Part shown: piece after piece, positions 1 through 12,938 of the stretch
Layout: every line of letters begins with the position of its first letter
Numbering within the stretch: the stretch's first letter is position 1
Assembly (NCBI GenBank): GCA_946965045.2
Contig: CAMPTO020000006.1
Coordinates: 1 to 12,938 of the forward strand
Source of the DNA: Epithemia pelagica
Taxonomy: Eukaryota; Protista; Bacillariophyta
Reading direction: 5' to 3'
DNA length: 12,938 nucleotides
Made by a program: the position numbers and the translations under genes
The notes under the pieces: model-generated
The model's database searches: none
Told to the model about the DNA's origin: nothing
What the model saw: the letters and a program-made list of their open reading frames with translations, nothing else

Positions 1-50
1 GAAGCAAAAAAACCCACACAACAACAGCAGAAGTTTAGAACCACATTCAG

Positions 51-87
51 ACCCTGACCCAACTCCAACAAGGGGCCCCTGTCTTGT
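51..87 (+). promoter_or_regulatory. 37-nt upstream element (Pol III-class), copy 1, upstream of U6
   Basis: ACCCTGACCCAACTCCAACAAGGGGCCCCTGTCTTGT; 32/37 identical to copies 3 and 4; ends 24-25 nt before U6. Confidence 0.8.
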
Positions 88-111
88 CAACCACCTTGTG
101 CATATATACTG

Positions 112-215
112 GACCCCAGAAATGGGACATCCGTTAAAATTGGATCGATACAGAGAAGATTAGCATGGTCCCTGCGCAAGGATGACACGCATTAATCGAG
201 AAAGTATCAACTTTT
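112..215 (+). ncRNA. U6: U6 snRNA
   Basis: ACAGAGA box 150-156, AGC triad 162-164, ISL GGTCCCTGCGCAAGGATGAC, T9 at 212-220; the 3' CGAGAAAGTAT pairs 10/11 with the U2 5' end; 5' end +/-1. Confidence 0.98.
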
Positions 216-387
216 TTTTTGTCCCCCGGATCACACGTATTTTTTACACTGGTGTCTTCTTCATGCTTCCCAGACCAACACATATGTGCAGACATACCCA
301 TCACCCACAGGTGGCAAGTGGCAGGCTGCAGTAACCCATTGAAATATTGGTTTCAAAAAACGACCATATGCTTTATGCTACTGGCAT

Positions 388-397
388 GCTTCCCTGA
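388..397 (+). promoter_or_regulatory. -48 snRNA-type upstream element of SL RNA copy 1
   Basis: GCTTCCCTGA, 47-48 nt upstream of the SL 5' end; same motif and spacing as U2/U3/U4/U5. Confidence 0.75.
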
Positions 398-434
398 GCA
401 TATACATGTCGAAAGCTGTGTAGAGAAAAAGAGC

Positions 435-546
435 AACCAACGATTTCTAAAGCTACAGTTTCTGTACTTCATTGGTATGGAAGCATGAAGATTACTCTTC
501 TCACACAACTTTGTCAAAACATGGCCGGTTTCGAAAGAGACTGGCC
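435..546 (+). ncRNA. Spliced-leader (SL) RNA, copy 1 (exon 435-474, donor GTATGG at 475)
   Basis: AACCAACGATTTCTAAAGCTACAGTTTCTGTACTTCATTG|GTATG carries the kinetoplastid/diplonemid CAGTTTCTGTACT..ATTG|GTATG core; GAAGA/TCTTC hairpin, Sm-like AACTTTG, GAAA-tetraloop 3' hairpin, T6 at 547-552. Confidence 0.95.
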
Positions 547-639
547 TTTTTTACGTTAGCATGATTGTCTTTGTGTGTCTTTGTGCAAAGCAAAAAAAAA
601 ACACACACAAGAAGTGAGGATCTTCAAAACCACGTTTTT

Positions 640-676
640 GACCTGACCCACCTCCAACTAGACAACCCTGTCTTGT
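640..676 (+). promoter_or_regulatory. 37-nt upstream element, copy 2, upstream of 7SL
   Basis: 34/37 identical to copies 3 and 4; ends 25-26 nt before the SRP RNA. Confidence 0.8.
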
Positions 677-701
677 ATTCCGACAATATGGTATCTATTG
701 A

Positions 702-1013
702 GCCGGGATGTGTTGGCTGCATCCTGAAACCCCTAGCTTCTGGGGGGGCAAGCTTCTCCAGAACTGGGCACTCTTTGAGGTGGACCAAAGGCACCTTCAA
801 CTTCTGTGTTGATGTGTTGTCCGTGTTAGTCTACTGTCCTGTTTGCGGCCTTGGTGTAAACCAGGGCAACAATCAGAGTGAAATGGGGTGAACCGGGCCA
901 GGCTGGTCTCACAGAGCAGCTCATAACTCCTGCAGTGGACAGTTCAAGGATCGCAGCACAGAGCAGAGTGAGGGTGTTTCCAACTCAATGGCTTGAACTG
1001 GAGAAGCGTTTCT
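702..1013 (+). ncRNA. SRP (7SL) RNA
   Basis: Alu-like 5' GCCGGG; helix 6 GCCTTGGT-GTAA-ACCAGGGC (848-867); helix 8 with CAGG (899-902) and AGCAG (915-919); GCTTCTCCAG/CTGGAGAAGC long-range helix; T6 at 1013-1018. Confidence 0.92.
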
Positions 1014-1176
1014 TTTTTACATTTTTCCATGTGAACATTGTTTCCACATCACCATACACATGTGTTGTTGATACACCCCACCACGTTGCCCAGACCATTC
1101 CTACCCACATTATTCACCACAAGTGGCATGTTTACCAGCACATGTTGGTGCTTAGAGCAATGTTAAGAAAAAGGGC

Positions 1177-1289
1177 AACCAACGATTTCTAAAGCTACAG
1201 TTTCTGTACTTCATTGGTATGGAAGCATGAAGATTATATTCTTCTCACACAACTTTGTCAAACATGGCCAGCCTCGAAAGAGACTGGCC
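1177..1289 (+). ncRNA. Spliced-leader (SL) RNA, copy 2 (exon 1177-1216)
   Basis: Exon identical to copy 1; intron part differs in the stem-II loop and stem III; T6 at 1290-1295; -48 motif is degenerate (GTTTACCAGC, 1130-1139). Confidence 0.93.
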
Positions 1290-1361
1290 TTTTTTACGTC
1301 ACCATGAGAAAAAAACATTCACACATATGATGCATGTACAAAGTGCACAGGTGTGTGTGTC

Positions 1362-1398
1362 ACCCTGACCCACCTCCAACAAGACAACCCTGTCTTGT
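1362..1398 (+). promoter_or_regulatory. 37-nt upstream element, copy 3
   Basis: ACCCTGACCCACCTCCAACAAGACAACCCTGTCTTGT; identical to copy 4. Confidence 0.8.
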
Positions 1399-1421
1399 TT
1401 TCCCATACTCTCCCTATGTTT

Positions 1422-1742
1422 GGGTGCTAAGTTAGTGTGCTACTTCGAAACCAAACAACTCGTTCAGCAACAGCTAAAACTTGAAAAGACCTTTCTTATC
1501 AGAAAATTCTTTACAATTTTTATGATGTGTCCTGCTGTGGCCTGATATGGCCCAAGGCGGAACCACTTTCATATGATGTAAATCCCGTACGTTCGTACAG
1601 AATATTACCCATGATGATTATTCTTACATTAGCGTGTAACACTAATTCTGACTGCGTTCTATTTCACACTTCAAATATTAGAACTGGATGTGGGGCTGCC
1701 AGTTTACTGGTGGTCCCGATCCAGCACACAACGCAAGCACCC
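1422..1742 (+). ncRNA. Orphan ~320-nt structured Pol III-class RNA, vault RNA-like candidate
   Basis: Starts 24 nt after the 37-nt element; GGGTGCT (1422-1428) pairs with AGCACCC (1736-1742); second stem GTT(A)GTGTGCT/AGCACACAAC; TACTTCGA at 1441-1448; T6 at 1743-1748. An RNA is likely; its identity is tentative. Confidence 0.65.
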
Positions 1743-1814
1743 TTTTTTATATTACCCCACCCAGTACCCCCCCTGTGTCTGTGTTGTTGCCTAAAAAAGC
1801 ATCACCTTTTACAG

Positions 1815-1824
1815 GCTTCCTTGT
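1815..1824 (+). promoter_or_regulatory. -48 snRNA-type element of an orphan small RNA
   Basis: GCTTCCTTGT; +48 lands on A1863. Confidence 0.5.
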
Positions 1825-1862
1825 GGGGAGTGTTCGGTCAAGTGATAGTGATGAAGAAGGAC

Positions 1863-1927
1863 AGGGGCGAGTTTTCTCGTGAAATGCTTTGAAGCCTCTG
1901 ACATTGAGAGGCTCGCTCCGACCTCTG
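1863..1927 (+). ncRNA. Orphan ~65-nt snRNA-class RNA candidate
   Basis: -48 motif; GGGGCGAG (1864-1871)/CTCGCTCC (1912-1919) stem; AGCCTCT/AGAGGCT hairpin (1893-1913); GTTTTTAA 3' signal like that of U3. Confidence 0.5.
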
Positions 1928-1957
1928 TTTTTAATAACCCTTACCGGTAACCACTGT

Positions 1958-1990
1958 GTATGTATGGTATGTATGGTATGTATGATATGT
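1958..1990. repeat. GTATGTATG microsatellite (3 units plus a degenerate unit)
   Basis: Direct reading. Confidence 0.85.
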
Positions 1991-2025
1991 TGCCTTTGTG
2001 TGTTTGTTTTTGTTTTGTTAAAAAA

Positions 2026-2215
2026 GAGGGTATGCCACTCCTGGATGTTGTGCAGCTCCAGGGCAACATGTGTGAACGGACCAGGTTGCCCTGGCGACCC
2101 GTCACCCCAATGAGAAATTGCGTTAATATCATCAGTGCACAAGGCACTGTATCAGATATTAAGCTGATAAGAACAGATAATACACTTGATCTTAGCCAAA
2201 AGGCCGAGAAGGTAT
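2026..2215 (-). ncRNA. U2: U2 snRNA
   Basis: Reverse complement begins ATACCTTCTCGGCCTTTTGGCTAAGATCAAGTGTATTATCTGTTCTTATCAG; stems IIa/IIb, III and IV present; ~190 nt; T6 follows. Confidence 0.97.
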
Positions 2216-2253
2216 GACTTCTTTTTAGTCCATACCAAATTCGACACCCATGT

Positions 2254-2263
2254 ACAGGGAAGC
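2254..2263 (-). promoter_or_regulatory. -48 element of U2
   Basis: GCTTCCCTGT exactly 48 nt upstream of 2215; near-duplicate at 2311-2330. Confidence 0.8.
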
Positions 2264-2364
2264 ATGATGATGATCAATATTACTAGGAAACAACAAGGCA
2301 AACAGATTACACACCCATGTCACAGGGAAGTGAGCGAAGGTGATGATCAATCGTAGTAAAAACA

Positions 2365-2507
2365 AGGCCGCCGAAGCAGCTACACAAATTGCCAATGTGG
2401 CAACGCCGAAGCGGCCCATGGCGGGAATTGGGTAGTTTTCAACCAGCAATCTCTCCACAGCGTCCCTATTTGGTCATTGCTTATGGAATTATCCCGAGCG
2501 CAAGAAT
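2365..2507 (-). ncRNA. U4: U4 snRNA
   Basis: 5' ATTCTTGCGC pairs with U6 GCGCAAGGAT; TTGCTGGTTGAAAAC (stem I); CCCGCCATG; Sm AATTTGTG; 3' GCTGC-TTCG-GCGGC; T5 follows. Confidence 0.96.
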
Positions 2508-2545
2508 ACCTCCTTTTCTCCCAGTCGTGTCACAAAGCTATGTCA

Positions 2546-2555
2546 ACAGGGAAGC
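2546..2555 (-). promoter_or_regulatory. -48 element of U4
   Basis: GCTTCCCTGT exactly 48 nt upstream of 2507. Confidence 0.8.
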
Positions 2556-2620
2556 GTGTTGGGGTGGTAACATAAAGACACCACGTAAAGCTAACACACC
2601 AGAACTACCACCACCAATGT

Positions 2621-2630
2621 GCCTCCCTGT
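2621..2630 (+). promoter_or_regulatory. -48 element of U3
   Basis: GCCTCCCTGT exactly 48 nt upstream of 2669. Confidence 0.8.
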
Positions 2631-2668
2631 AGACATCTGTGCAGCCGATAGGTGGAACAAACAAGGGC

Positions 2669-2878
2669 AAGACTGTACTCTACACAGGATCTGTTTTTGA
2701 GTGCATTCGTGTTGAAGATTGTTTTCTTCGGCACAAGACCAAAGCTGGATGATGACATAGGTTGGGCATGTGCAGCATGAGCACTTGCGATGATTGTCAC
2801 ATACTTCTTGTATTGTTTTGTCTCTCCCCTGTATGGCGCAGGGAAGAGTACCAGGCACAGCCCTTCCACTTACAGCTT
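2669..2878 (+). ncRNA. U3: U3 snoRNA
   Basis: 5' AAGACTGTACTC..AGGATC (GAC/A'/A boxes); C' GATGATGA at 2748-2755; B/C CATGAG..GATGA at 2776-2793; terminal stem AAGCTG/CAGCTT; 210 nt; T5 follows. Confidence 0.9.
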
Positions 2879-2980
2879 GTTTTTAAGAAAAACCTCAAAA
2901 AAGGCTTCACATTACTTTTTTCACCTTCAAGGACATCTTGATCAATCAAGAAGTTACCACACTATCCTCGCTCTCAACAT

Positions 2981-2990
2981 GCTTCCATGT
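2981..2990 (+). promoter_or_regulatory. -48 element of U5
   Basis: GCTTCCATGT exactly 48 nt upstream of 3029. Confidence 0.75.
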
Positions 2991-3028
2991 GTAGCAAAGT
3001 GCATACAGCAATAGAACAAAACAGAGCC

Positions 3029-3138
3029 ATATCACGGTTCTTGCCCATATCGAACTCATCTTTCGCCTTTTACTAAAGATGACCGTGGGTAAGAGCCACT
3101 AAGTGAAAGCATAATTTTTGAAGGGGCCTTTGTGTCTC
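3029..3138 (+). ncRNA. U5: U5 snRNA
   Basis: Loop 1 GCCTTTTAC (3065-3073) in an ATCTTT/AAAGAT stem; Sm AATTTTTG at 3113-3120; short 3' hairpin. Confidence 0.96.
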
Positions 3139-3166
3139 ATCTGTTTTAAGTCTTGACAACCACTAC

Positions 3167-3176
3167 GCTTCCCTGA
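3167..3176 (+). promoter_or_regulatory. -48 element of U1
   Basis: GCTTCCCTGA; +48 predicts a start at 3215. Confidence 0.7.
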
Positions 3177-3214
3177 AGGTGTTGGAGTTTCGCATGTTGT
3201 TAAACTCAGCTAGA

Positions 3215-3375
3215 GGTTACATACCTTACTGGTGTCTGACCTGATCAACAAGGGCGTCGACACACCAGTGGCCCTTGCATTGCACTGCGCAGGGGATACT
3301 GGTGGCACTAGCTTCGGCTGGCTTGCACAGTGAAATTTTTGACAGCGGCGGTGCTGTGCTTTGCACAAACCCGCC
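3215..3375 (+). ncRNA. U1: U1 snRNA
   Basis: ACATACCT at 3219-3226; helix H ACTG/CAGT (3228-3231/3328-3331); 70K-like loop GATCAACAAG; U1A loop ATTGCACTGC; Sm AAATTTTTG at 3333-3341; GGCGG/CCGCC stem IV; 5' end 3214-3217. Confidence 0.93.
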
Positions 3376-3598
3376 TTTTTAAACAAACAAACCAAAACAA
3401 ACGTGATCACACAAACCATCATGTTACCCAGTAAACCCAGTAAACCCAGCACACTGGTCTAGAGGGATCGACCACTGAGTGGTGACCTGTGAGCACACAG
3501 GCACCTGCTCCGATGCAGTAGTGCAGCGCACTAAGTGCTGTGCTAAGGACTGGCCAAACTTGTTAAACCTGCTGACCCACAAACCGGTTTTCACAACC

Positions 3599-3643
3599 GA
3601 AGCAAAAACAAGCTCAGAAATAAAAAGCTCTTCAAAGGTTTTC
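3599..3643 (+). repeat. 45-nt block upstream of 5S copy 1
   Basis: Identical to 4354-4398; both end 17 nt before the 5S gene. Confidence 0.85.
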
Positions 3644-3660
3644 GAACCTGACTCAGTATT

Positions 3661-3780
3661 GGATTCGGCCATACTCTGGTGAATACACCTCATCCCGCCT
3701 GATTTGAGAAGTTAAGCACCAGCAGGCCTGGATAGTACTGGCGTGGGTGACCAGCTGGGAAGTCCGGGTGCTTGAATCCT
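3661..3780 (+). rRNA. 5S rRNA, copy 1
   Basis: GGATTCGGCCATAC...GAAGTTAAGC...TAGTACT...GGGAAGTCC...GAATCC; helix I GGATTC/GAATCC; T-run follows. Confidence 0.98.
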
Positions 3781-3824
3781 TTTTGCTTTTCTTCCGTGTT
3801 GGTGTGTGGTTTTAGGACATCCAG

Positions 3825-3861
3825 ACCCTGACCCACCTCCAACAAGACAACCCTGTCTTGT
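3825..3861 (+). promoter_or_regulatory. 37-nt upstream element, copy 4
   Basis: 37/37 identical to copy 3; no known RNA gene downstream. Confidence 0.8.
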
Positions 3862-3885
3862 ATCCCTGTGTTTGTTGCACTATCC

Positions 3886-4262
3886 AGAGAGCAGAAATGA
3901 GGGGAGACTACACCACCGACGGTGCTTCAGCCTACAGGAGCATGCTGGAATGTGAATGCTGCATGACAGCATTCACAATTTCACCTTTGGTGAGATGGAG
4001 ATGAGCGCAAAGGTGCAAAAATGCACAACAAAAACTGAGGAAGAGGCATCCATACTCCCCAGAAGGGACGTGCGCACCTGCAGCCAAAAATTCTCCTGTG
4101 CTTAATATCATGCGCGCTGGGGATGCCGAAATAGCTAAACTGTTGCAAGAAGTGGGACTAATTCCCAGGCAGTTGCCCTGTACAACATGCAAGTCCACAA
4201 TGCCAGAAACACTGTACTGGACACCAAGATACTCCAAGAAGATCGCAAACTGGCCTTATTTT
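3886..4262 (+). ncRNA. Orphan Pol III-class transcript candidate (~375 nt)
   Basis: Starts 25 nt after the element; first T4 at 4259-4262; 9-bp end-closing helix 3894-3902/4254-4262; perfect 11-bp hairpin 3951-3977. Alternatively a decayed transposase (see findings). Confidence 0.4.
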
Positions 4263-4353
4263 AGGTGAAATGACCTAATGCAGAGTGCAGCGGAACAGGG
4301 GAGACAAATAAAGTTTCCTGTACCATGCAACACCCAAGACCTTTTGCACAAGT

Positions 4354-4398
4354 GAAGCAAAAACAAGCTCAGAAATAAAAAGCTCTTCAAAGGTTTTC
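4354..4398 (+). repeat. 45-nt block upstream of 5S copy 2
   Basis: Identical to 3599-3643. Confidence 0.85.
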
Positions 4399-4415
4399 CA
4401 CCCAGACCCATTATT

Positions 4416-4535
4416 GGATTCGGCCATACTCTGGTGAATACACCTCATCCCGCCTGATTTGAGAAGTTAAGCACCAGCAGGCCTGGATAGTACTGGCGTG
4501 GGTGACCAGCTGGGAAGTCCGGGTGCTTGAATCCT
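4416..4535 (+). rRNA. 5S rRNA, copy 2
   Basis: Identical to copy 1; T6 follows. Confidence 0.98.
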
Positions 4536-4617
4536 TTTTTCCTTATTTGTGGTGTAACACACAGAAGTTGGTTGAAAAGTGAACTGATAGTATTCAGCGC
4601 AAAGCATGATTATTGAA

Positions 4618-4689
4618 GGGTATATAGCTCAGTGGTAGAGCATTCGGCTGCAGTCCGAACGGTCCCTGGTTCGAACCCGGGTGTGCCCT
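4618..4689 (+). tRNA. tRNA-Cys(GCA)
   Basis: Cloverleaf; TTCGG-CTGCAGT-CCGAA; U73. Confidence 0.97.
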
Positions 4690-4790
4690 CTCTTTTTGTT
4701 TCAAGACCAGATTTTCTCTTGAGTGTTACTTCTCCCTTTTTGGTTTTGAATTCCATCCCCACCTTGTAAAGATTCGTTTAAGAAATGTAA

Positions 4791-4863
4791 GGGGGTTTAG
4801 CTCAAATGGTAGAGCGCTCGCTCAGCATGCGAGAGGTAGAGGGATCGATACCCTCAATCTCCA
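4791..4863 (+). tRNA. tRNA-Ala(AGC), C33
   Basis: CTCGC-TCAGCAT-GCGAG; G3:U70. Confidence 0.96.
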
Positions 4864-4954
4864 AACATTTTTTGGCTTGGAAACACTGTTGTGATATTTC
4901 CAGATCTCGATTCTTTTTGGTACCAAAGAAAAAGAAGGAAGCGACAGAATTGTA

Positions 4955-5026
4955 TCTCCTATGGTGTAGTGGTTAGCACTCGAGACTCTGAATCTCGCGA
5001 CCGCGGTTCGAATCCGCGTAGGAGAA
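4955..5026 (+). tRNA. tRNA-Gln(CTG)
   Basis: CGAGA-CTCTGAA-TCTCG; acceptor TCTCCTA/TAGGAGA. Confidence 0.96.
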
Positions 5027-5119
5027 CTTTCCTTTTTCTCCATTTCGTCCCTTGTTATTCTCCTCTATGACTGGTTGAAACACATTCCCACTTCCATATT
5101 CTTGTTGGCTTTTATTGAA

Positions 5120-5201
5120 GGCGAGATGGCCGAGTGGTCTAAGGCGCCAGGTTAAGGCCCTGGTCCCTTCGGGGGCGTGGGTTCAAACCCCACTCTCGTC
5201 A
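5120..5201 (+). tRNA. tRNA-Leu(AAG)
   Basis: CCAGG-TTAAGGC-CCTGG; long variable arm. Confidence 0.97.
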
Positions 5202-5290
5202 CTTGTTATTCTTTTTCATTTTCATTTTCAATCTATCCCTTTTGTTTTGTTTTCAAGATTGTGCAAAACACAAAAAGCACACTTGTCAGG

Positions 5291-5363
5291 TCCTCCTTGG
5301 CGCAGTCGGTAGCGCGTCAGGCTGTTAACCTGCAGGTCGTTGGTTCGAACCCAACAGGAGGAG
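5291..5363 (+). tRNA. tRNA-Asn(GTT), copy 1
   Basis: TCAGG-CTGTTAA-CCTGC; identical to 10735-10807. Confidence 0.96.
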
Positions 5364-5422
5364 ACTTTTTTCCCTTCTCAAACCATTTTCTGTTCTTTGC
5401 AAAAGTCATAAAAAACTGGGAA

Positions 5423-5504
5423 GGCGAGATGGCCGAGCGGTCTAAGGCGCCAGGTTTAGGCCCTGGTCTCTTCGGAGGCGTGGGTTCAAACCCCACTCTC
5501 GTCA
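5423..5504 (+). tRNA. tRNA-Leu(TAG)
   Basis: CCAGG-TTTAGGC-CCTGG; long variable arm. Confidence 0.97.
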
Positions 5505-5568
5505 CGTTATTACCATTTTTCCGCAGAAAACCCACCTCTTGTGGAAAACAGTTCCGGTCATTATTGTA

Positions 5569-5641
5569 GCAGCTATCGTCTAGTGGTTAGGACGCTCGCC
5601 TCACACGCGAGAGATCGTCGGTTCAATCCCGACTAGCTGTA
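5569..5641 (+). tRNA. tRNA-Val(CAC)
   Basis: CTCGC-CTCACAC-GCGAG. Confidence 0.97.
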
Positions 5642-5731
5642 ATTTCTTTTTGAACTTTCCTTCACATTTTCGTTCAATGCAACGATCGAAAAGATGTCCC
5701 CATGCAGATAATAGTTTTGCCTACTATCAGA

Positions 5732-5803
5732 TCCGCTGTAGTATAGTGGTTAGAACAGCCGGCTCTCACCCGGCAGACCGGGGTTCAATTCCCCGCAGCG
5801 GAA
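5732..5803 (+). tRNA. tRNA-Glu(CTC)
   Basis: GCCGG-CTCTCAC-CCGGC. Confidence 0.97.
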
Positions 5804-5897
5804 AATACCTTTTTTTAGACCAAGTTTTGGAGAGAAGAATTTCTGACTTTTGAATATTAACGCCATCATGTAAATCTGGATGAAGAAAATAATCAGT

Positions 5898-5969
5898 GGC
5901 TTAGTGGTCTAGTGGCATGATTCTCGCTTCGGGTGCGAGAGGTCCAGGGTTCGATTCCCTGCTGAGCCC
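5898..5969 (+). tRNA. tRNA-Pro(CGG)
   Basis: CTCGC-TTCGGGT-GCGAG. Confidence 0.97.
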
Positions 5970-6036
5970 CTCTTTTTATTTAGGTAGTTTCTTGCTTGGG
6001 AATTGTTTAGAAAAATTATTTCCACATCTTTTCGAC

Positions 6037-6126
6037 CACCAAAATCCCAAGATGAGGAAGTTTGGAAAAGTGCATTTTTGTGAAAGTATTTTGCCATATC
6101 TTTGTTGTCACCAAAATCCCAAGATG
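6037..6126. repeat. 18-nt direct repeat CACCAAAATCCCAAGATG (6037-6054, 6109-6126)
   Basis: Exact match, 72-nt period. Confidence 0.8.
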
Positions 6127-6183
6127 GTGAGAGAATCTTGAAAAATCATTTTCCATATTTTCACTTCCCAGTGAAAAAGAGAA

Positions 6184-6256
6184 TACCCATGGTGGGGATC
6201 GAACCCACAATCTTTCGCTTAGGAAGCGAACGCCTTATCCATTGGGCTACACGGGC
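6184..6256 (-). tRNA. tRNA-Arg(CCT)
   Basis: TTCGC-TTCCTAA-GCGAA. Confidence 0.97.
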
Positions 6257-6362
6257 CTAATAGTTTTACCTTCTTTCCTTTTCTCTGGGGTGGTCAAATT
6301 TAGGACAAGAGACTTTTCTGCATGACCACCCCACAATGATTCTTTGGTTTAAATGAATGTGA

Positions 6363-6435
6363 GCCTCCCTAGCTCAGTCGGTAGAGCGCAAGGCCCTTAA
6401 CCTTGTGGTCGCGGGTTCGAGCCCCGCGGGAGGTG
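6363..6435 (+). tRNA. tRNA-Lys(CTT), copy 1, C33
   Basis: CAAGG-CCCTTAA-CCTTG; identical to 11364-11436. Confidence 0.96.
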
Positions 6436-6701
6436 CTTTTCTTTTTGAATGTTTACGATTTTGCAGGTTTCTGAGATTTTGAGGCAAATGAAAACCAAAA
6501 AATATTTCCTCCACTTGATCTCAGTTCTGTTTCGTTGGCAAGTTGAGAGTGGAATTTGGGTGAAAATATGTGTTTTCCGAACCAACACAGGACTCCCACC
6601 GACCGGTGTAGGTTTTGCGTTCAACCAGGTGTGAACTGCTTCCACTCGCGAAAAGTGCCAGACCCTTTTGCTGGGGATAGCACGTTTCAGCCCCACAACT
6701 T

Positions 6702-7214
6702 ATCTCCTTTCTGGGCATGTCCAGTGTGCTCAGCTGCCGCTTCTTGGCGACTCACCAGTACAGAATGGTGGAATCCAGCACAGAATGGAATGGCTGGGAA
6801 ATCCTTAGCAATCCATAATTCAGATGGAAAAACTCCTGACCTGGCTATTGAATTTTCGGATCATTTTCTCAGTCACAATGCAAGCACAGAATGGAAACCA
6901 AAACCAAGCACAGAATGGAACACGGCTATAAGACTCCAGCCATTCCATTCTGTGCTGGTTTTTCGTTTCCATTCTGTGCTTGCATTGTGACTGAGAAAAT
7001 GATCTGAAAATTCAATACCCGGGTCAGGAGTTTTTTTTTCCACTCCTAACAAATCCTTACAGTAAGCCTATAAGTCTCCAGCCATTCCATTCTGTGCTGG
7101 TTTTTGGAGCCCATTCTGTGAGCACTCGCTCGGGCCTGTACTGGAGTATAGCGGCCAGGCCATCTCCCTTCTGCGTTCCTGCCTGTCACATCCAGTGCTC
7201 AGTTGCTGCTTCTT
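6702..7214. repeat. Nested foldback element: ~95-bp inverted arms 6826-6920/6943-7041, outer 23-bp IR 6775-6797/7078-7100, flanking imperfect direct repeats 6702-6745/7162-7214
   Basis: Direct comparison of arms; CAGAATGG/CCATTCTG sub-repeat occurs four times per side. Confidence 0.9.
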
Positions 7215-7255
7215 CAGCACAACCGCATCACACATCACATCACCAAAAAATAGAA

Positions 7256-7327
7256 AGGCAACTGGGGGGATCGAACCCCCGACCCTTGGTTTACAAGACC
7301 AATGCTCTGCCACTGAGCTAAATCGCC
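7256..7327 (-). tRNA. tRNA-Thr(TGT)
   Basis: TTGGT-CTTGTAA-ACCAA. Confidence 0.97.
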
Positions 7328-7409
7328 GCTGATTAAGATGCTTTTGCTGTTTCTCCTGCGAAGAAGTTTTTCAAGACAACACAGAAAGGAAAGTGTGTAA
7401 AAAAAGAAA

Positions 7410-7480
7410 TGACCCTAGACGGAATCGAACCGCCGTTGATGGATTTGGAATCCATAGTGCTACCGCTACACCATAGGGCC
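7410..7480 (-). tRNA. tRNA-Trp(CCA)
   Basis: ATGGA-TTCCAAA-TCCAT; 71 nt; A73. Confidence 0.93.
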
Positions 7481-7565
7481 CATGATTTAGGGCTTCAATG
7501 CGTTTAGCATGAAGGTGGAAATTTTGCTGAAAATCCCACACAAAGGAAAAAGACACACAAAAAAG

Positions 7566-7638
7566 TGCGAGGTGCCAGGATCGAACTGACGACCTTAGGA
7601 TTATGGGACCTACGCGCTCCCGACTGCGCCAACCTCGC
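7566..7638 (-). tRNA. tRNA-Met(CAT), elongator type, C33
   Basis: TAGGT-CCCATAA-TCCTA; U31:U39, G1-C72 and T54 indicate an elongator. Confidence 0.95.
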
Positions 7639-7762
7639 CTTGATATTATCGTATCATTAAGAAATACATGGGGTGCAAATTTCTACAGGTTTGTGTGGCA
7701 AAAAAATTTTTTTGAGCCAAAAAATTTTATGGGCTTCTGTGAAAACAATGACAGTTGTAGAA

Positions 7763-7846
7763 CCTCTCGTAGCTCAATTGGTAGAGCGCTCGACTGTAGA
7801 ATACTCGGTTATCGAGCGGTCGCTGGTTCGATTCCGGCCGAGAGGA
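7763..7846 (+). tRNA. tRNA-Tyr(GTA) with 11-nt intron (7800-7810)
   Basis: CTCGA-CTGTAG[AATACTCGGTT]A-TCGAG; 73+11 nt. Confidence 0.96.
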
Positions 7847-7923
7847 TTTTTTTCGTTTTCGTGTTCCAGATTATTTTCTGCAAACAGATGACTGCCTAAA
7901 AACAAAGAACGGTGAGAATTACA

Positions 7924-8005
7924 GCAGTCGTATCCAAGTGGTTACGGAGGTGGACTAGAAATCCATTGGGCTCTGCCCGCGCAGGTTCAAGTCCTGCCGA
8001 CTGCG
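7924..8005 (+). tRNA. tRNA-Ser(AGA)
   Basis: GTGGA-CTAGAAA-TCCAT; long variable arm; G73. Confidence 0.97.
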
Positions 8006-8103
8006 ATTCATTTTTTGTTCACGAATTTTCGTGCATTTTCGTCGTTTCTGTGCTCATTTTAGACCATTTTGATGCGCGAAATTAAATCAGAGTGAAGATT
8101 GTA

Positions 8104-8175
8104 TCCTCGGTAGTATAGAGGTCAGTATTTCCGCCTGTCACGCGGAAGACCCGGGTTCAATTCCCGGCCGGGGAA
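8104..8175 (+). tRNA. tRNA-Asp(GTC), A73
   Basis: TCCGC-CTGTCAC-GCGGA. Confidence 0.95.
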
Positions 8176-8237
8176 TTCTTTTTTGTACAGGGCTCCCACT
8201 CATTGTTTCGTTTCTTTTCTGATGAAAATCAAATCAG

Positions 8238-8310
8238 GCCCCGTTGGCGCAATGGATAGCGCGTTGGACTTCGAATCCAAAGGTTGCGGGTTCGAGTCCC
8301 GCACGGGGTT
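8238..8310 (+). tRNA. tRNA-Arg(TCG)
   Basis: TTGGA-CTTCGAA-TCCAA. Confidence 0.97.
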
Positions 8311-8595
8311 AACTTTTTGAACATTGTTTTTTTGAACTTTTTTGAAACACAAAAAAGTGAGAGGTTGGTGTCAAATGAATTACAGTGACAAGTTACAGTC
8401 ACAACAGATAAAAACATTGGGTCCAGTGGGAAGGGGTCACCCCGGGATTTTGGATTTTTTGGTAGTCAACCCACCCATAAGAACCTTGAAAAAATTTTGG
8501 GAAAAACTTGAAAACTGGAAATTCTTTGAAAAGCTGACATTTCAGAAAAAATTTTCTGAACATGAAAATTTTGCTTCCCCCTTTAAAAAAAGAAC

Positions 8596-8667
8596 TGCAC
8601 TTACCGGGAGTCGAACCCGGGCCGCTCGCTTGGAAGGCGAGAATACTAACCGTTATACCATAAGTGC
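8596..8667 (-). tRNA. tRNA-Gly(TCC)
   Basis: CTCGC-CTTCCAA-GCGAG. Confidence 0.97.
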
Positions 8668-8756
8668 TGTTACTTTCATGCAAAGTGTTTTCTTTGTGAG
8701 GGGCGATTTCAAAATGAAAATAATTTCAAATTCTTCAAATTGCCTAAAAAAAGAAG

Positions 8757-8828
8757 CAACCGTGGCAGGACTCGAACCTGCAACCGCCTGATCCGTGGTC
8801 AGGCGCTCTTCCATTGAGCCACACGGTC
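8757..8828 (-). tRNA. tRNA-Arg(ACG), C33
   Basis: CCTGA-CCACGGA-TCAGG. Confidence 0.96.
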
Positions 8829-8917
8829 CATGTCTTTAGGCAATAGTATTTTTTATGTGGCCTGCATATTTTTGGAGTTGAAAAAAAAATTTAGACGGTT
8901 GATTGTACAGCTAAAAA

Positions 8918-8990
8918 AGCGGTTACCGAGAATTGAACTCGGGTCTCCCGTGCCACAAACGGGTGTTCTAAACCACTAAACCATAACCGC
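8918..8990 (-). tRNA. tRNA-His(GTG), U73
   Basis: CCCGT-TTGTGGC-ACGGG. Confidence 0.96.
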
Positions 8991-9106
8991 TTGAATATTC
9001 CCACTTATTGGGATCTCAGAAAGGGTTTTATTTCGAGGGATATTGTGAAATATTTTTCAACCATGCAACGAGCGGCAACTCGAGCACAATTTCGACTAAT
9101 ATCGTA

Positions 9107-9176
9107 GCGTAATTGGTCTAGTGGTAGAATGGCCCCCCGCCACGGGGTCGGCCGGGTTCGATTCCCGGATTACGCA
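9107..9176 (+). tRNA. tRNA-Gly(GCC), C33, 3-nt variable loop
   Basis: GCCCC-CCGCCAC-GGGGT; 70 nt. Confidence 0.93.
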
Positions 9177-9416
9177 CTCTCTTTTTGCGATTGACAAAAG
9201 CAAAACAATATGGTTTCGGACAGTTTCAGGTCAGTCACAAACTCGTTCAAAACGAAAAAGTGGAAATGATATGTACTCTTTCTTGTGTAAGGATTCTTAG
9301 TGGAGAAAGAAATTTTTTGTCTGATGCCGGTTTTTGCTCGACATAGTAAGTCAGTTCAGTCACAACTTCCGTCACAATCGAAAAAAAAATTTGACTCATA
9401 TGTTTATAAACCCATG

Positions 9417-9653
9417 CTGACTTACATGTTTATTTGTTCACAAAAATCCCAGTTCATAAACATGTAAGTCAGTATGGCCGCTCTGGTGGCCGCATGTTTT
9501 TGGGTTAACTTACGTGTTTATGAAAAACCTGACTTACATGTTTATTTGTTCACAAAATTCCCTGGGTTAATAACCATGTAAGTCAGGTTTTTCATAACCA
9601 TGTAAGTCAGGTTGGGACTACAACATGTTCATAAACCCAACCTGACTTACATG
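9417..9653. repeat. Array of three perfect inverted repeats built on the 12-mer CTGACTTACATG
   Basis: 17 bp 9417-9433/9456-9472; 23 bp 9518-9540/9575-9597; 18 bp 9599-9616/9636-9653. Confidence 0.92.
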
Positions 9654-9722
9654 TATATTTCTTCACAAAATTCCCAAGATATGGCCGGTGCACTGGTCAG
9701 AGACATCACGTTTGCGGGCCAA

Positions 9723-9836
9723 CCCCCCTGTGCGCCCGATTAGCTTACCCCCCTGTGCGCCCGATTAGGAATACCCCCCTGTGCGCCCGATTAGGGATCC
9801 CCCTGTGCGCCCGATTAGCTTACCCCCTGTGCGCCC
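9723..9836. repeat. GC-rich ~25-nt tandem repeat C5-6TGTGCGCCCGATTAG, 4 full units plus 1 partial
   Basis: Units at 9723, 9748, 9774, 9799 and 9823, separated by CTTA/GAATA/GGAT/CTTA. Confidence 0.93.
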
Positions 9837-9862
9837 ACCTACCTAGTCACTGTGACCAGGTG

Positions 9863-9882
9863 CCTGGTCAGATCTGACCAGG
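9863..9882. repeat. Perfect 20-bp palindrome CCTGGTCAGATCTGACCAGG
   Basis: Self-complementary; half-sites also at 9693-9701 and 9853-9860. Confidence 0.9.
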
Positions 9883-10196
9883 TACCCTTACTAATATGCC
9901 TTACCAATATGGCCAGGGGTGTGGTATGTTGGGTGCACAAGGGAGTTTCACGATGGGGGAATACATGCTGGACATGTGCCTTATCTTATGCACAGGTGCA
10001 ATGGATGGCATAGCAAACCCGTATGCCCATTGCGTGTGTGGGTTTGCTGGCCTAGGACTGTACGGAAAGTGCACGGGTCCACCACAGTACAACCAGTCAT
10101 GCACCAAGGGCAACTGGCTGTTTTATCAATTTTTGAACTTTTTTTTAGACATTGCCAAACCTTCTCCATAATCTGAGATCTTGGGAAACAAGATAA

Positions 10197-10268
10197 GCTC
10201 GCGTGGCGCAATGGAAGCGCGTCGGTTCCCGACGCCGGAGGTTGCGGGTTCGATCCCCGCCGCGAGTA
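10197..10268 (+). tRNA. tRNA-Arg(CCG), C33
   Basis: TCGGT-TCCCGAC-GCCGG; Arg-like body with D-loop AATGGAA. Confidence 0.9.
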
Positions 10269-10379
10269 CTTTTTGTTCATTCCAAAATATTTTTAGATTT
10301 CCTCCTTTGCCAAATTGAAAATTCAGAAATGCGAAAATATCAAAAAACAGCTCCGAAATTTGAAAGCAATTAAAAAGGA

Positions 10380-10451
10380 TTCCCCCTCCGGGGTTTGAAC
10401 CCGGGTCGCCTGGGTGAAAGCCAGGTATACTAACCACTGTACTAAAGGGGA
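10380..10451 (-). tRNA. tRNA-Glu(TTC)
   Basis: CCTGG-CTTTCAC-CCAGG. Confidence 0.97.
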
Positions 10452-10548
10452 GGTGATACTTAGGCACAATCCAAAAAGGGTACTTTTGTGCAAGGAACAC
10501 GGAATTTCAAACGAAAAAATAAATAAAAATGAAAATCCAAAAAGACAA

Positions 10549-10620
10549 GGGCTCGGCGGGGAATTGAACCCCGGACCTCTCGCACCCTAAGCGAGAATCA
10601 TGCCACTAGACCACCGAGCC
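10549..10620 (-). tRNA. tRNA-Pro(AGG)
   Basis: CTCGC-TTAGGGT-GCGAG. Confidence 0.97.
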
Positions 10621-10734
10621 ACGAATTCTCTCGCATTCTCTTCGTAACGCGGCCATAAGTTTCCATCATTCCTTGTGTGTGTTTTCGTTTTGAATAAGGT
10701 CCCCATGTAAATGCTGTCTTCGCTAACAATCAGA

Positions 10735-10807
10735 TCCTCCTTGGCGCAGTCGGTAGCGCGTCAGGCTGTTAACCTGCAGGTCGTTGGTTCGAACCCAACA
10801 GGAGGAG
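10735..10807 (+). tRNA. tRNA-Asn(GTT), copy 2
   Basis: Identical to 5291-5363. Confidence 0.96.
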
Positions 10808-11061
10808 ATTTTTCATTTTTTTGAGTTTTTGATTCTATTTTTGATTTTGAGCTAAAAATCCACATTGTGTGTCATCTTGATGTTGAAACTATTTTTCAGA
10901 TTTCCAAGGTTGTCTCACCAAAAAAACCAAACATCTTGAATGCTGTCCTAACTTGGAGATTGTTGACCTGAAGATAAAACAGATTTTGTCAGGTTTTTTT
11001 TTTTGAGTTTGAAAAAGTTCAGAACAGAATGAAAAAAGGGATCGATGCAGTGTATAAAAAA

Positions 11062-11143
11062 CGCGAACGGCAAGGTTCGAACTTGCGCATGCAGAGCACA
11101 CTCGCTTAGCAGGCGAGCCCCGTAACCACTTGGGTACGTCCGC
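11062..11143 (-). tRNA. tRNA-Ser(GCT)
   Basis: CTCGC-CTGCTAA-GCGAG; long variable arm. Confidence 0.97.
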
Positions 11144-11363
11144 TTAATTACCTGTCAGTACTTAGGACGAAGCTTGTACTTTGTTTAACGACACGTTAGT
11201 GATCACTTGTGTGGTCACCAAAAATCATCGCAATTGTGACCACCAAAAAAATTTTTTGGGCACGATTTCGCGCGATGGTGAGCTCATTGCACGACGGCCG
11301 ACACACCATGTTTTCCAACAAATTTAAAAAATTCCAGAAAAATTCAGGTATCAATACAAAAAG

Positions 11364-11436
11364 CACCTCCCGCGGGGCTCGAACCCGCGACCACAAGGTT
11401 AAGGGCCTTGCGCTCTACCGACTGAGCTAGGGAGGC
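11364..11436 (-). tRNA. tRNA-Lys(CTT), copy 2, C33
   Basis: Identical to 6363-6435, opposite strand. Confidence 0.96.
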
Positions 11437-11538
11437 TCATATTAACTTAAATCAAAGAATCAACGTGGGGTACTTGTGTGTACCTGCAACCACCAAATTT
11501 TCCATCGTTGTTGCGTGAACAAAAGGATCCGGATTATC

Positions 11539-11610
11539 TCTCCTATGGTGTAGTGGTTAGCACCCTGGACTTTGAATCCAGTAGCCGCGGTTCAAACCCG
11601 CGTGGGAGAA
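11539..11610 (+). tRNA. tRNA-Gln(TTG)
   Basis: CTGGA-CTTTGAA-TCCAG. Confidence 0.97.
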
Positions 11611-11724
11611 CTTTTCTTTTTCCAAGTGTTTTCAATATTTTTTGGAGCTTTGTCACACACATCTTCAATCTCTGCATTTGATGACAAAACATAGATCACA
11701 GAAATCAAACGAAAAGGTAAAGAA

Positions 11725-11806
11725 CGCTGACGGCAGGGTTCGAACCTGCGCGGGCAGAGCCCAGTGGATTTCAAGTCCACCTCCGTAACCACTTGGATAC
11801 GTCAGC
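11725..11806 (-). tRNA. tRNA-Ser(TGA)
   Basis: GTGGA-CTTGAAA-TCCAC; long variable arm. Confidence 0.97.
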
Positions 11807-11882
11807 ATAGTTGAGGAAGTACAACGCCCCAGATCCTGAAAATGAGCGCAAAAAGAGAATCCAATTGATCCAAAAAAGTAGG

Positions 11883-11954
11883 CACCCGCCGTGGGGATCG
11901 AACCCACGACCATTGGATTAAAAGTCCAACGCTCTACCGCTGAGCTAGGCGGGC
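11883..11954 (-). tRNA. tRNA-Lys(TTT)
   Basis: TTGGA-CTTTTAA-TCCAA. Confidence 0.97.
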
Positions 11955-12067
11955 ATTCGTTTTAAAGGAAAGAGTCAATTTCAAGGCTTGTTGCGTTCTT
12001 GAAAAAAACTGACAAAAAGACGAACAGAAAGTGCCCCAAGTACGTCTCCTTGAGGGACATTTATCAG

Positions 12068-12139
12068 GGGCGTTTAGCTCAGTGGTAGAGCGCCCGTTCT
12101 GCATACGGGAGGCCGAGGGTTCGAACCCCTCAATGTCCA
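12068..12139 (+). tRNA. tRNA-Ala(TGC), C33
   Basis: CCCGT-TCTGCAT-ACGGG; G3:U70. Confidence 0.96.
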
Positions 12140-12239
12140 TTTTTTTGCCTTATTTTGTTGATTATTTTTTGGTTGGGCCAGTTAACACACAAAAATATGA
12201 ACTGGCACCATTGTGCAGTGCCTGCGATGAGGATGTGTG

Positions 12240-12659
12240 TGATGGTCCAATTGGCGAGTCTGATGTCATAATGTGTTCAGGAACATCCAAATGACCCATT
12301 TTCCCAACGTTTTCACATTTTTGAGCATTTTGCTATTACGCAATAGTGGTACAATAGGCATTTTACTGGGTCATTTTAACCAACTCTATCAGGACACTTC
12401 TGATGCTCCAATTGGCGATTCTGACCTCATAATGGCTTCATGAGCAGCCGAATAACCCGTTTTCCAAATATTTTCACATTTTTGAACATTTTGCCATTCG
12501 TGGAATGGTGGCACAAAAGTCATTTTACTGGGTCATTTTCGCCAACTCGATCAGGGGACACTTCTGGTGCTCCAATTTGCGGTTCTGACCTCATAATGGA
12601 TTCAAGAGCACCCAAATAACCCATTTTCCCAACGTTTTCACATTTTTGACCATTTTGCT
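12240..12659. repeat. ~161-164-nt imperfect tandem repeat, ~2.6 copies
   Basis: CCAATT anchors at 12247, 12408 and 12572; TTTTCACATTTTTGA and CATTTTACTGGGTCATTTT recur. Confidence 0.9.
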
Positions 12660-12764
12660 GTTGCAGAGTATCAGTAAGATGAGGTCATGCAAATACAGTT
12701 TTGTGCACAACAGAAAAAAAATAGTGTGTACCCCAGGTTGGCGATTCCTTTCGTCATTATTGTC

Positions 12765-12837
12765 GGTCGTGTAGCTCAGTCGGTAGAGCATTGGTCTAAT
12801 AAGCCAACGGTCCCAGGTTCGAGCCCTGTCACGACCA
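12765..12837 (+). tRNA. tRNA-Ile(AAT)
   Basis: TTGGT-CTAATAA-GCCAA; C49:U65 mismatch in the T stem. Confidence 0.94.
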
Positions 12838-12915
12838 ATACTTTTTCTACTACTTTGACTTTGACCTGTTCAAAAAATGTTGGCCGTGTAAAAAATATGC
12901 ATACCCTAAAACAAG

Positions 12916-12938
12916 GCCTCTTTAGCTCAGTTGGGAGA
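12916..12938 (+). tRNA. 5' part of a tRNA, truncated by the window edge, probably Phe
   Basis: GCCTCTT-TA-GCTC-AGTTGGGA-GA; the D-loop is typical of eukaryotic Phe; anticodon not visible. Confidence 0.7.

Follow-up and report, generated by a model that had tools for sequence, protein, structure and literature searches.

Cytosine in place of uridine 33 in elongator tRNA genes of an Epithemia pelagica small-RNA gene cluster and of related arrays

Uridine at position 33 (U33) of transfer RNA (tRNA) is among the most conserved nucleotides in biology, and it forms the U-turn that presents the anticodon. A cluster of tRNA genes from the diatom Epithemia pelagica, in which a considerable part of the genes carry cytosine at this position (C33), raises the question of whether such genes work, and what becomes of the cytosine in the mature tRNA. 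The cluster lies in a stretch of 12,938 nucleotides (nt), which we refer to as the window (GenBank assembly GCA_946965045.2, contig CAMPTO020000006.1, positions 1 to 12,938, forward strand). A first-pass annotation, made from the letters of the window, had reported the C33 genes and offered two alternatives: an undescribed C33-to-U editing system, or a ribosome that tolerates or selects C33. Here we show that C33 is present in the DNA of intact genes, and that almost all tRNA families of related arrays switch between T and C at position 33 while the structure of the tRNAs stays under selection. Thus, these algae have relaxed a rule of tRNA design that is otherwise nearly universal. The reading that we prefer, to which we give a probability of about one half, is that C33 is kept in the mature tRNA and tolerated.

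C33 in eight tRNA genes of the window

The tRNA genes were called with ARAGORN and then with the Rfam covariance model RF00005 (gathering score 29), and the anticodon arm (positions 27-43) of every tRNA gene in the window was read by a script. ARAGORN places 33 tRNA genes at 4618-12837, on both strands and at a density of about one per 250 base pairs (bp), and the Rfam model recovers the same genes. The anticodon set is of the eukaryotic type, with A at position 34 (A34) in Ala, Leu, Ser, Arg, Pro and Ile (AGC, AAG, AGA, ACG, AGG and AAT). Because of this A34 set, the lack of an encoded CCA and the T-runs typical of RNA polymerase III (Pol III) terminators, we regard the window as eukaryotic nuclear DNA. 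U33 is held to be invariant in nuclear elongator genes; in the window it is found in 25 of the 33 genes, and the other eight, which correspond to seven isoacceptors, have C33:

4791-4863, plus strand, tRNA-Ala(AGC): loop TCAGCAT, C33 at 4823, 53.8 bits, T-run downstream
6363-6436, plus strand, tRNA-Lys(CTT): loop CCCTTAA, C33 at 6395, G1-U72, 63.4 bits
7565-7638, minus strand, elongator tRNA-Met(CAT): loop CCCATAA, C33 at 7606, 55.9 bits; G1, U31-U39, T54
8756-8828, minus strand, tRNA-Arg(ACG): loop CCACGGA, C33 at 8797, 62 bits (Rfam alignment)
9107-9177, plus strand, tRNA-Gly(GCC): loop CCGCCAC, C33 at 9138, 45.2 bits, the lowest of the eight
10197-10269, plus strand, tRNA-Arg(CCG): loop TCCCGAC, C33 at 10228, 57.9 bits
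11363-11436, minus strand, tRNA-Lys(CTT), second copy, identical to the first: C33 at 11404
12068-12139, plus strand, tRNA-Ala(TGC): loop TCTGCAT, C33 at 12099, 65.8 bits; the sole tRNA of the window with both U at position 34 (U34) and C33

These are exactly the eight genes, with the same loops, that the first-pass annotation had named. Its description of them as otherwise intact genes lying on both strands also holds. Firstly, all eight score 45-66 bits against RF00005, above the gathering score. Secondly, a run of four to seven T residues is found within 12 nt of the 3' end of each of them, and none has an encoded CCA. Furthermore, the Rfam model, which is independent of ARAGORN, aligns a C under the consensus U33 in Arg-ACG and Gly-GCC, and the departure is specific to position 33. 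Under a generous background of 3% non-U33 genes, which is a published figure, the probability of finding eight or more among 33 genes is about 5e-6. The window holds no U33 paralog of any of the C33 genes, as the annotation had also stated.

Two of its other claims need to be modified. The changes had been described as independent of each other, and this stands for seven of them; the two Lys-CUU genes, however, are the arms of a 121-nt inverted duplication, and we therefore count seven independent cases, not eight. In addition, C33 had been said to be normally confined to some initiator tRNAs, whereas yeast tRNA-Leu(GAG) is a natural C33 elongator. The Met gene of the window is itself an elongator and not an initiator, because it has G1, a U31-U39 mismatch in the anticodon stem (UAGGU/UCCUA) and a normal T54 loop (T loop GTTCGATCC). 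The marks of an initiator, namely A1:U72, three G:C pairs at the foot of the anticodon stem, A54 and A60, are absent from it.

Position 33 in related arrays and in named algae

As query for a scan of public metagenome contigs we took 37 nt from the middle of the Lys-CUU gene, with any base allowed at positions 32 and 33. At least 120 loci matched, and all the array counts given below rest on these loci, among the matches listed. Positions 32-33 read CT in 88, CC in 39 and GC in one of the matches listed. About one third of the listed loci are very dense tRNA arrays, with 94-330 bp per gene and up to 45 tRNAs in 5 kb. Ten arrays, all holding C33, were searched with Rfam and contain various of the genes for U1, U2, U4, U5, U6, signal recognition particle (SRP) RNA, 5S ribosomal RNA (rRNA) and selenocysteine tRNA (tRNA-Sec); the window and the C33-holding arrays are small-RNA blocks of one kind. 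Sorted by how similar their tRNAs are to those of the window, the arrays form three sets. In group A arrays the tRNAs are 88-93% identical to those of the window, and U2 and 5S are about 80% identical; the corresponding values for group B are 79-83% and about 73%. Eleven listed arrays, from other lineages and without any C33, formed the control set.

The C33 fraction of each array was calculated without Lys-CUU, the gene used as query. It amounts to 45-60% of the genes in the richest group A arrays (L119, L111, L086, L065 and L087) and to 8-40% in group B, compared with 19% in the window. In the control arrays, C33 occurs in none of the 91 distinct tRNAs among the matches listed.

The C33-holding arrays and the window together have 271 distinct tRNAs, of which 79 have C33, 191 have T and one has A, the sole purine among the matches listed; these counts, and those by family given below, refer to distinct sequences and not to independent events. 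In group A and the window, 32 families have two or more different anticodon arms, and position 33 is variable in 29 of them. The arm position that ranks second varies in ten families, and the loop positions 32, 37 and 38 in one or two. The corresponding figure for position 33 is 13 of 18 families in group B and 0 of 16 in the control arrays. Lys-CUU genes that are otherwise identical differ between loci at position 33 alone, and some arrays contain both the C33 and the U33 form of one tRNA (Ala-AGC in L065 and L087). Thus, what is usually the most conserved nucleotide of the anticodon arm is here the most variable one, and it varies, the single A aside, as T or C only. A second purine had seemed to occur as G33 in tRNA-Leu(UAG) at eight metagenome loci, but this proved to be an ARAGORN misreading of an intron-bearing tRNA-Tyr(GUA) with U33. 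Mutational pressure towards GC has no detectable part in this, since the GC content of the spacers is not significantly correlated with the C33 fraction (rho 0.17, p 0.37).

Could the C33 genes simply be redundant or silent copies, with U33 paralogs elsewhere in the genome carrying translation? The cluster could be a second set, given that the Glu and Asp tRNAs and the U2 of the window differ from those of three model diatoms. The structure of the genes, however, points the other way. Besides the intact cloverleaves and terminators, 4.96 of the five anticodon-stem pairs are kept in C33 genes and 4.94 of five in U33 genes, and comparison of C33 orthologues reveals 23 compensatory double changes against two broken pairs. 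Because the stems are kept through compensatory changes, the C33 genes look functional rather than decaying. Moreover, relatives keep whole decoding sets in their arrays, and many anticodons are served in some arrays by a C33 gene only; the arrays also hold small nuclear RNA (snRNA), SRP and 5S genes and can be tandem units. We therefore consider it unlikely that the C33 genes are redundant or silent copies.

The arrays come from metagenomes, and a published tRNAscan table for three algae (PMC4156623, supplement 5, with Emiliania huxleyi in its parts 6-9) allowed named species to be compared. For Thalassiosira pseudonana, the first part of the table gives approximately 35 distinct tRNAs, all of them with U33. 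We looked for 18 C33 loop motifs in the T. pseudonana and Fragilariopsis cylindrus portions consulted, and none is present there as an anticodon loop. In the parts covering E. huxleyi, on the other hand, C33 elongators are found in at least ten families (Arg-ACG, Lys-CUU, Phe-GAA, Ala-CGC, Pro-AGG, Pro-UGG, Pro-CGG, Thr-AGU, Glu-UUC and Ile-AAU). These genes are high-scoring in the table, and the initiator also has C33. C33-rich elongator sets thus exist in a cultured model haptophyte and, as far as these portions of the table go, are absent from two model diatoms. Two separate observations concern the same source: the E. huxleyi parts also hold many copies of a tRNA-like repeat labelled 'Pseudo CGG', and PMC4156623 contains no comment on this repeat or on the C33 elongators. 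A full-text literature search returned no paper in which C33 or U33 is connected with diatoms, haptophytes or other algae.

The annotation had proposed a survey of C33 in related genomes, and the state is indeed present in two array lineages of metagenomes and in E. huxleyi. This also bears out its statement that sequencing error is unlikely. An error of sequencing or assembly would have had to produce seven independent changes at one structural position on both strands, and to lead to the same state again in the E. huxleyi genome and in dozens of metagenome assemblies that are independent of each other; in addition, 60-82% of the sampled words of the window are contained in public runs that bear five different organism labels. 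We regard this explanation as extremely improbable. What the eight genes of the window could not reveal by themselves is a lineage-wide relaxation of position 33 from U to pyrimidine, E. huxleyi included.

Families that carry C33 and the fate of the nucleotide

C33 is unevenly distributed over the tRNA families. It is enriched in A34 tRNAs (31 of 54, against 48 of the 217 others; odds ratio 4.7, p=1e-6): in all listed arrays that hold any C33, Thr-AGU is among the C33 tRNAs, and C33 is frequent in Pro-AGG, Ala-AGC, Leu-AAG and Arg-ACG of the arrays. Conversely, tRNAs with A at position 36 (A36), which read codons starting with U, are depleted of C33 (6 of 50 against 73 of 221, p=0.003). The tRNAs with G at position 34 have it in eight of 51 cases. 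In the arrays listed, C33 was found in none of Asn, Tyr, Trp, Leu-UUR, Ser-GCU, Ser-UGA, Sec, Gly-CCC, Pro-CGG and Pro-UGG; the last two have C33 in the E. huxleyi parts of the published table (PMC4156623), unlike in the listed arrays. Decoders of ANN codons show no depletion (28 of 91). Outside the A34 families, C33 shows no trend with the G+C content of positions 35-36, which we used as a measure of codon-anticodon strength. The biases in the A36 and G34 tRNAs suggest that C33 is visible to selection.

Methionine tRNAs deserve separate mention. C33 is the standard state in initiator tRNAs of plants and animals. In the related arrays whose Met genes were examined (L035, L103, L045, L046, L067, L065 and L087), the true initiators carry the initiator marks together with U33. 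C33 occurs instead in the elongator Met, both in part of group B and in the window. The arrangement in these arrays is the reverse of that in animals and plants.

How might C33 tRNAs function? According to our preferred reading, these would be working nuclear elongator genes of lineages in which the rule 'U at position 33' has been relaxed to 'pyrimidine at position 33'. C33 would stay in the mature tRNA and be used by the ribosome as it is in the initiators of plants and animals and in yeast tRNA-Leu(GAG). The enzymes that read U33 in other organisms, namely Elongator, the machinery for N6-threonylcarbamoyladenosine (t6A) and possibly the queuosine enzyme, would be less demanding in these algae. 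The unequal occurrence among families would then reflect how far each anticodon depends on a true U-turn, with C33 frequent beside A34, rare beside A36 and absent from Asn, Tyr and Trp. Retention explains the avoidance of C33 in certain families, because a change to C33 would be seen by selection. We rank it ahead of editing, by a small margin, because the C is kept in all natural C33 tRNAs for which the mature sequence has been determined.

Two known systems serve as precedents for retention, and neither is a complete match. In the initiator tRNA-Met of plants and animals, as would be the case here, C33 is encoded by the gene and kept in a mature, functional tRNA, and the t6A machinery accepts it. 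However, that tRNA is an initiator acting in the peptidyl site, with one species per genome, whereas here elongators of seven anticodons are concerned. The tRNA-Leu(GAG) of Saccharomyces cerevisiae is a working C33 elongator in which the change of C33 to U has little effect. Like it, the genes described here have C33 in an otherwise normal elongator gene kept by selection, as judged from the conserved stems and the compensatory changes among C33 orthologues. On the other hand, tRNA-Leu(GAG) is single-copy and non-essential and is backed up by tRNA-Leu(UAG), whereas here C33 is found in 24% of a nearly one-of-each set, in 45-60% of the genes in some relatives, and in some tRNAs without an evident back-up. 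The tRNA-Ser(CAG) of Candida, which has G33, is likewise a natural departure from U33 in an elongator. It differs in that the replacement is a purine, affects one tRNA and is tied to codon reassignment and lowered decoding efficiency; in our case C alone replaces U, in many tRNAs and with no sign of reassignment.

Several points weigh against retention. First, U33 has recently been shown to trigger Elongator: the U33C change abolishes acetyl-CoA hydrolysis by the human enzyme in vitro and the formation of 5-methoxycarbonylmethyluridine at position 34 in yeast. Nevertheless, U34 tRNAs are not depleted of C33 (15 of 58), and the fraction is five of eight for Gln-UUG, Glu-UUC and Lys-UUU taken together. 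Second, U33 is a determinant for t6A in yeast and bacteria, and the t6A enzymes of yeast and E. coli reject C33, although those of human and worm accept it. Third, retention needs several adapted enzymes, whereas a single editing enzyme would explain the nearly neutral flipping between T and C at once. Fourth, the enrichment in A34 tRNAs has no ready explanation under simple tolerance. Finally, the family counts are of distinct sequences, as said above, and the presence of C33 in the mature tRNA is deduced from DNA.

Several of these points recur, with the opposite sign, in the editing alternative. It holds that C33 is deaminated to U33 after transcription, perhaps by a widened activity of ADAT2/ADAT3, so that T-to-C mutations become harmless and drift. 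Within the anticodon arm, position 33 is indeed the single site whose behaviour is nearly neutral: it drifts freely in about 30 families, and C alone replaces T. C33 occurs freely in tRNAs whose modification at U34 or A37 needs U33 in yeast, human or E. coli, and its 4.7-fold enrichment concerns the A34 tRNAs, which are the natural substrates of ADAT2/3. Cytosolic C-to-U editing is known at position 32 of Thr tRNAs in Trypanosoma brucei, where it involves ADAT2/ADAT3 and Trm140, and of two Ser tRNAs in Arabidopsis. As in those systems, a genomic C lies in the anticodon loop of nuclear-encoded tRNAs, near the ADAT target A34. Thr-AGU, the prime case of C32 editing in T. brucei, is the very tRNA in which C33 is fixed in the C33-holding arrays, and it has C33 in E. 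huxleyi as well. However, the known editing takes place at position 32 (or 34 in mitochondria), affects few tRNAs and has never been seen at 33; in our genes the C is at 33, and position 32 has the usual C or U. Our literature search found no description of C33-to-U editing, the initiators with a known mature sequence retain C33, and the avoidance of C33 in A36 tRNAs, Asn, Tyr and Trp would need an additional assumption about the specificity of the enzyme. On balance, editing is a possible account, but a somewhat less probable one than retention. The broader version, in which general C33-to-U33 editing would operate in the window lineage, the second array lineage and E. huxleyi and would repair from a quarter to more than half of the cytosolic tRNAs, is advanced with the same reserve; if true, no nuclear tRNA editing of greater extent would be known, and the edited position would be without precedent.

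As to the third explanation, C33 could be positively selected in particular tRNAs, for example to tune decoding by inosine-34 or to escape anticodon-loop nucleases. In the window lineage, the second array lineage and E. huxleyi, C33 is found in the same families (Thr-AGU, Pro-AGG, Arg-ACG, Ala-AGC, Leu-AAG and Lys-CUU), and the constancy of Thr-AGU would fit this view. Most families, however, flip between close relatives, and the coexistence of both forms of Ala-AGC in two arrays looks like drift. We regard positive selection as unlikely.

Editing or tolerance, the pair of alternatives offered by the first-pass annotation, is still the right choice to put, and its interpretation as a whole is partly supported. 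Whole tRNA sets with 20-60% C33 elongators could have one of three meanings, each of which would be informative: U33 may be dispensable for the ribosome and for several modification enzymes; an editing activity may restore U33; or C33 tRNAs may lack modifications thought to be essential, for example in Glu-UUC, Gln-UUG and Lys-UUU of the relatives and E. huxleyi. From a practical point of view, real tRNA genes of these groups will receive too low a score from gene finders and pseudogene filters in which non-U33 is penalised.

The small-RNA cluster and its surroundings

Upstream, the tRNA array of the window adjoins other small-RNA genes, all identified with Rfam:

112-217, U6
702-1009, SRP RNA
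2025-2215, minus strand, U2
2368-2507, minus strand, U4
3030-3140, U5
3661-3780 and 4416-4535, 5S rRNA

A similar mix of genes accompanies the C33-rich metagenome arrays. No convincing protein gene was found in the block of the window, and none of the flanking open reading frames of the C33-rich loci has a Pfam match. At least two arrays are tandem or circular units. The two ends of one contig (L059, 1-8823) share an overlap of 103 bp, so that its unit measures 8720 bp and contains 30 tRNAs and a 5S gene; in another (L046, 1-10267) the sequence recurs about every 7.9 kb. None of the papers that we found seems to describe a complete 'RNA toolkit' repeated in the manner of ribosomal DNA.

Comparison with other diatoms yielded several observations on the RNAs of the cluster. 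The U2 of the window has a canonical 5' end, unlike the published Phaeodactylum U2 primers, which do not match it; an origin of the window from Phaeodactylum is therefore rejected. The Glu and Asp tRNAs (8104-8175, 5732-5803 and 10380-10451) are without the D-arm and acceptor signatures common to Thalassiosira, Fragilariopsis and Phaeodactylum. The tRNA probes published for Phaeodactylum tricornutum, whose tRNA genes are mostly singletons according to recent papers, also differ from the tRNAs of the window. The RNAs of the cluster look like those of a generic eukaryote, and they could be a second RNA gene set in this genome. The Lys-CUU genes (6363-6436 and 11363-11436, listed with 11881-11954) have a G1 that pairs with U72, and G73; both traits are also found in Lys-CUU of related arrays and, in the portion of the published table consulted, in Lys tRNAs of T. 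pseudonana.

As regards public runs, very small ones (113-166 million letters) hold 65-82% of the sampled words of the window. This coverage, together with that under five organism labels, may mean that the locus is multi-copy, or that the sequence is present in differently labelled samples. RNA runs hold only 5-8% of the sampled words.

Some minor features of the array remain to be mentioned. The 'tRNA-Ser(AGA)' that ARAGORN reports at 7763-7846 on the plus strand is really a tRNA-Tyr(GUA) with U33, loop CTGTAGA and an 11-nt intron after position 37. Lastly, two kinds of repeat lie among the tRNA genes: a unit of about 162 nt that is repeated three times in tandem, with 80-88% similarity between the copies, at 12231-12658, and a 93-nt inverted repeat with a 22-nt spacer at 6828-7035.

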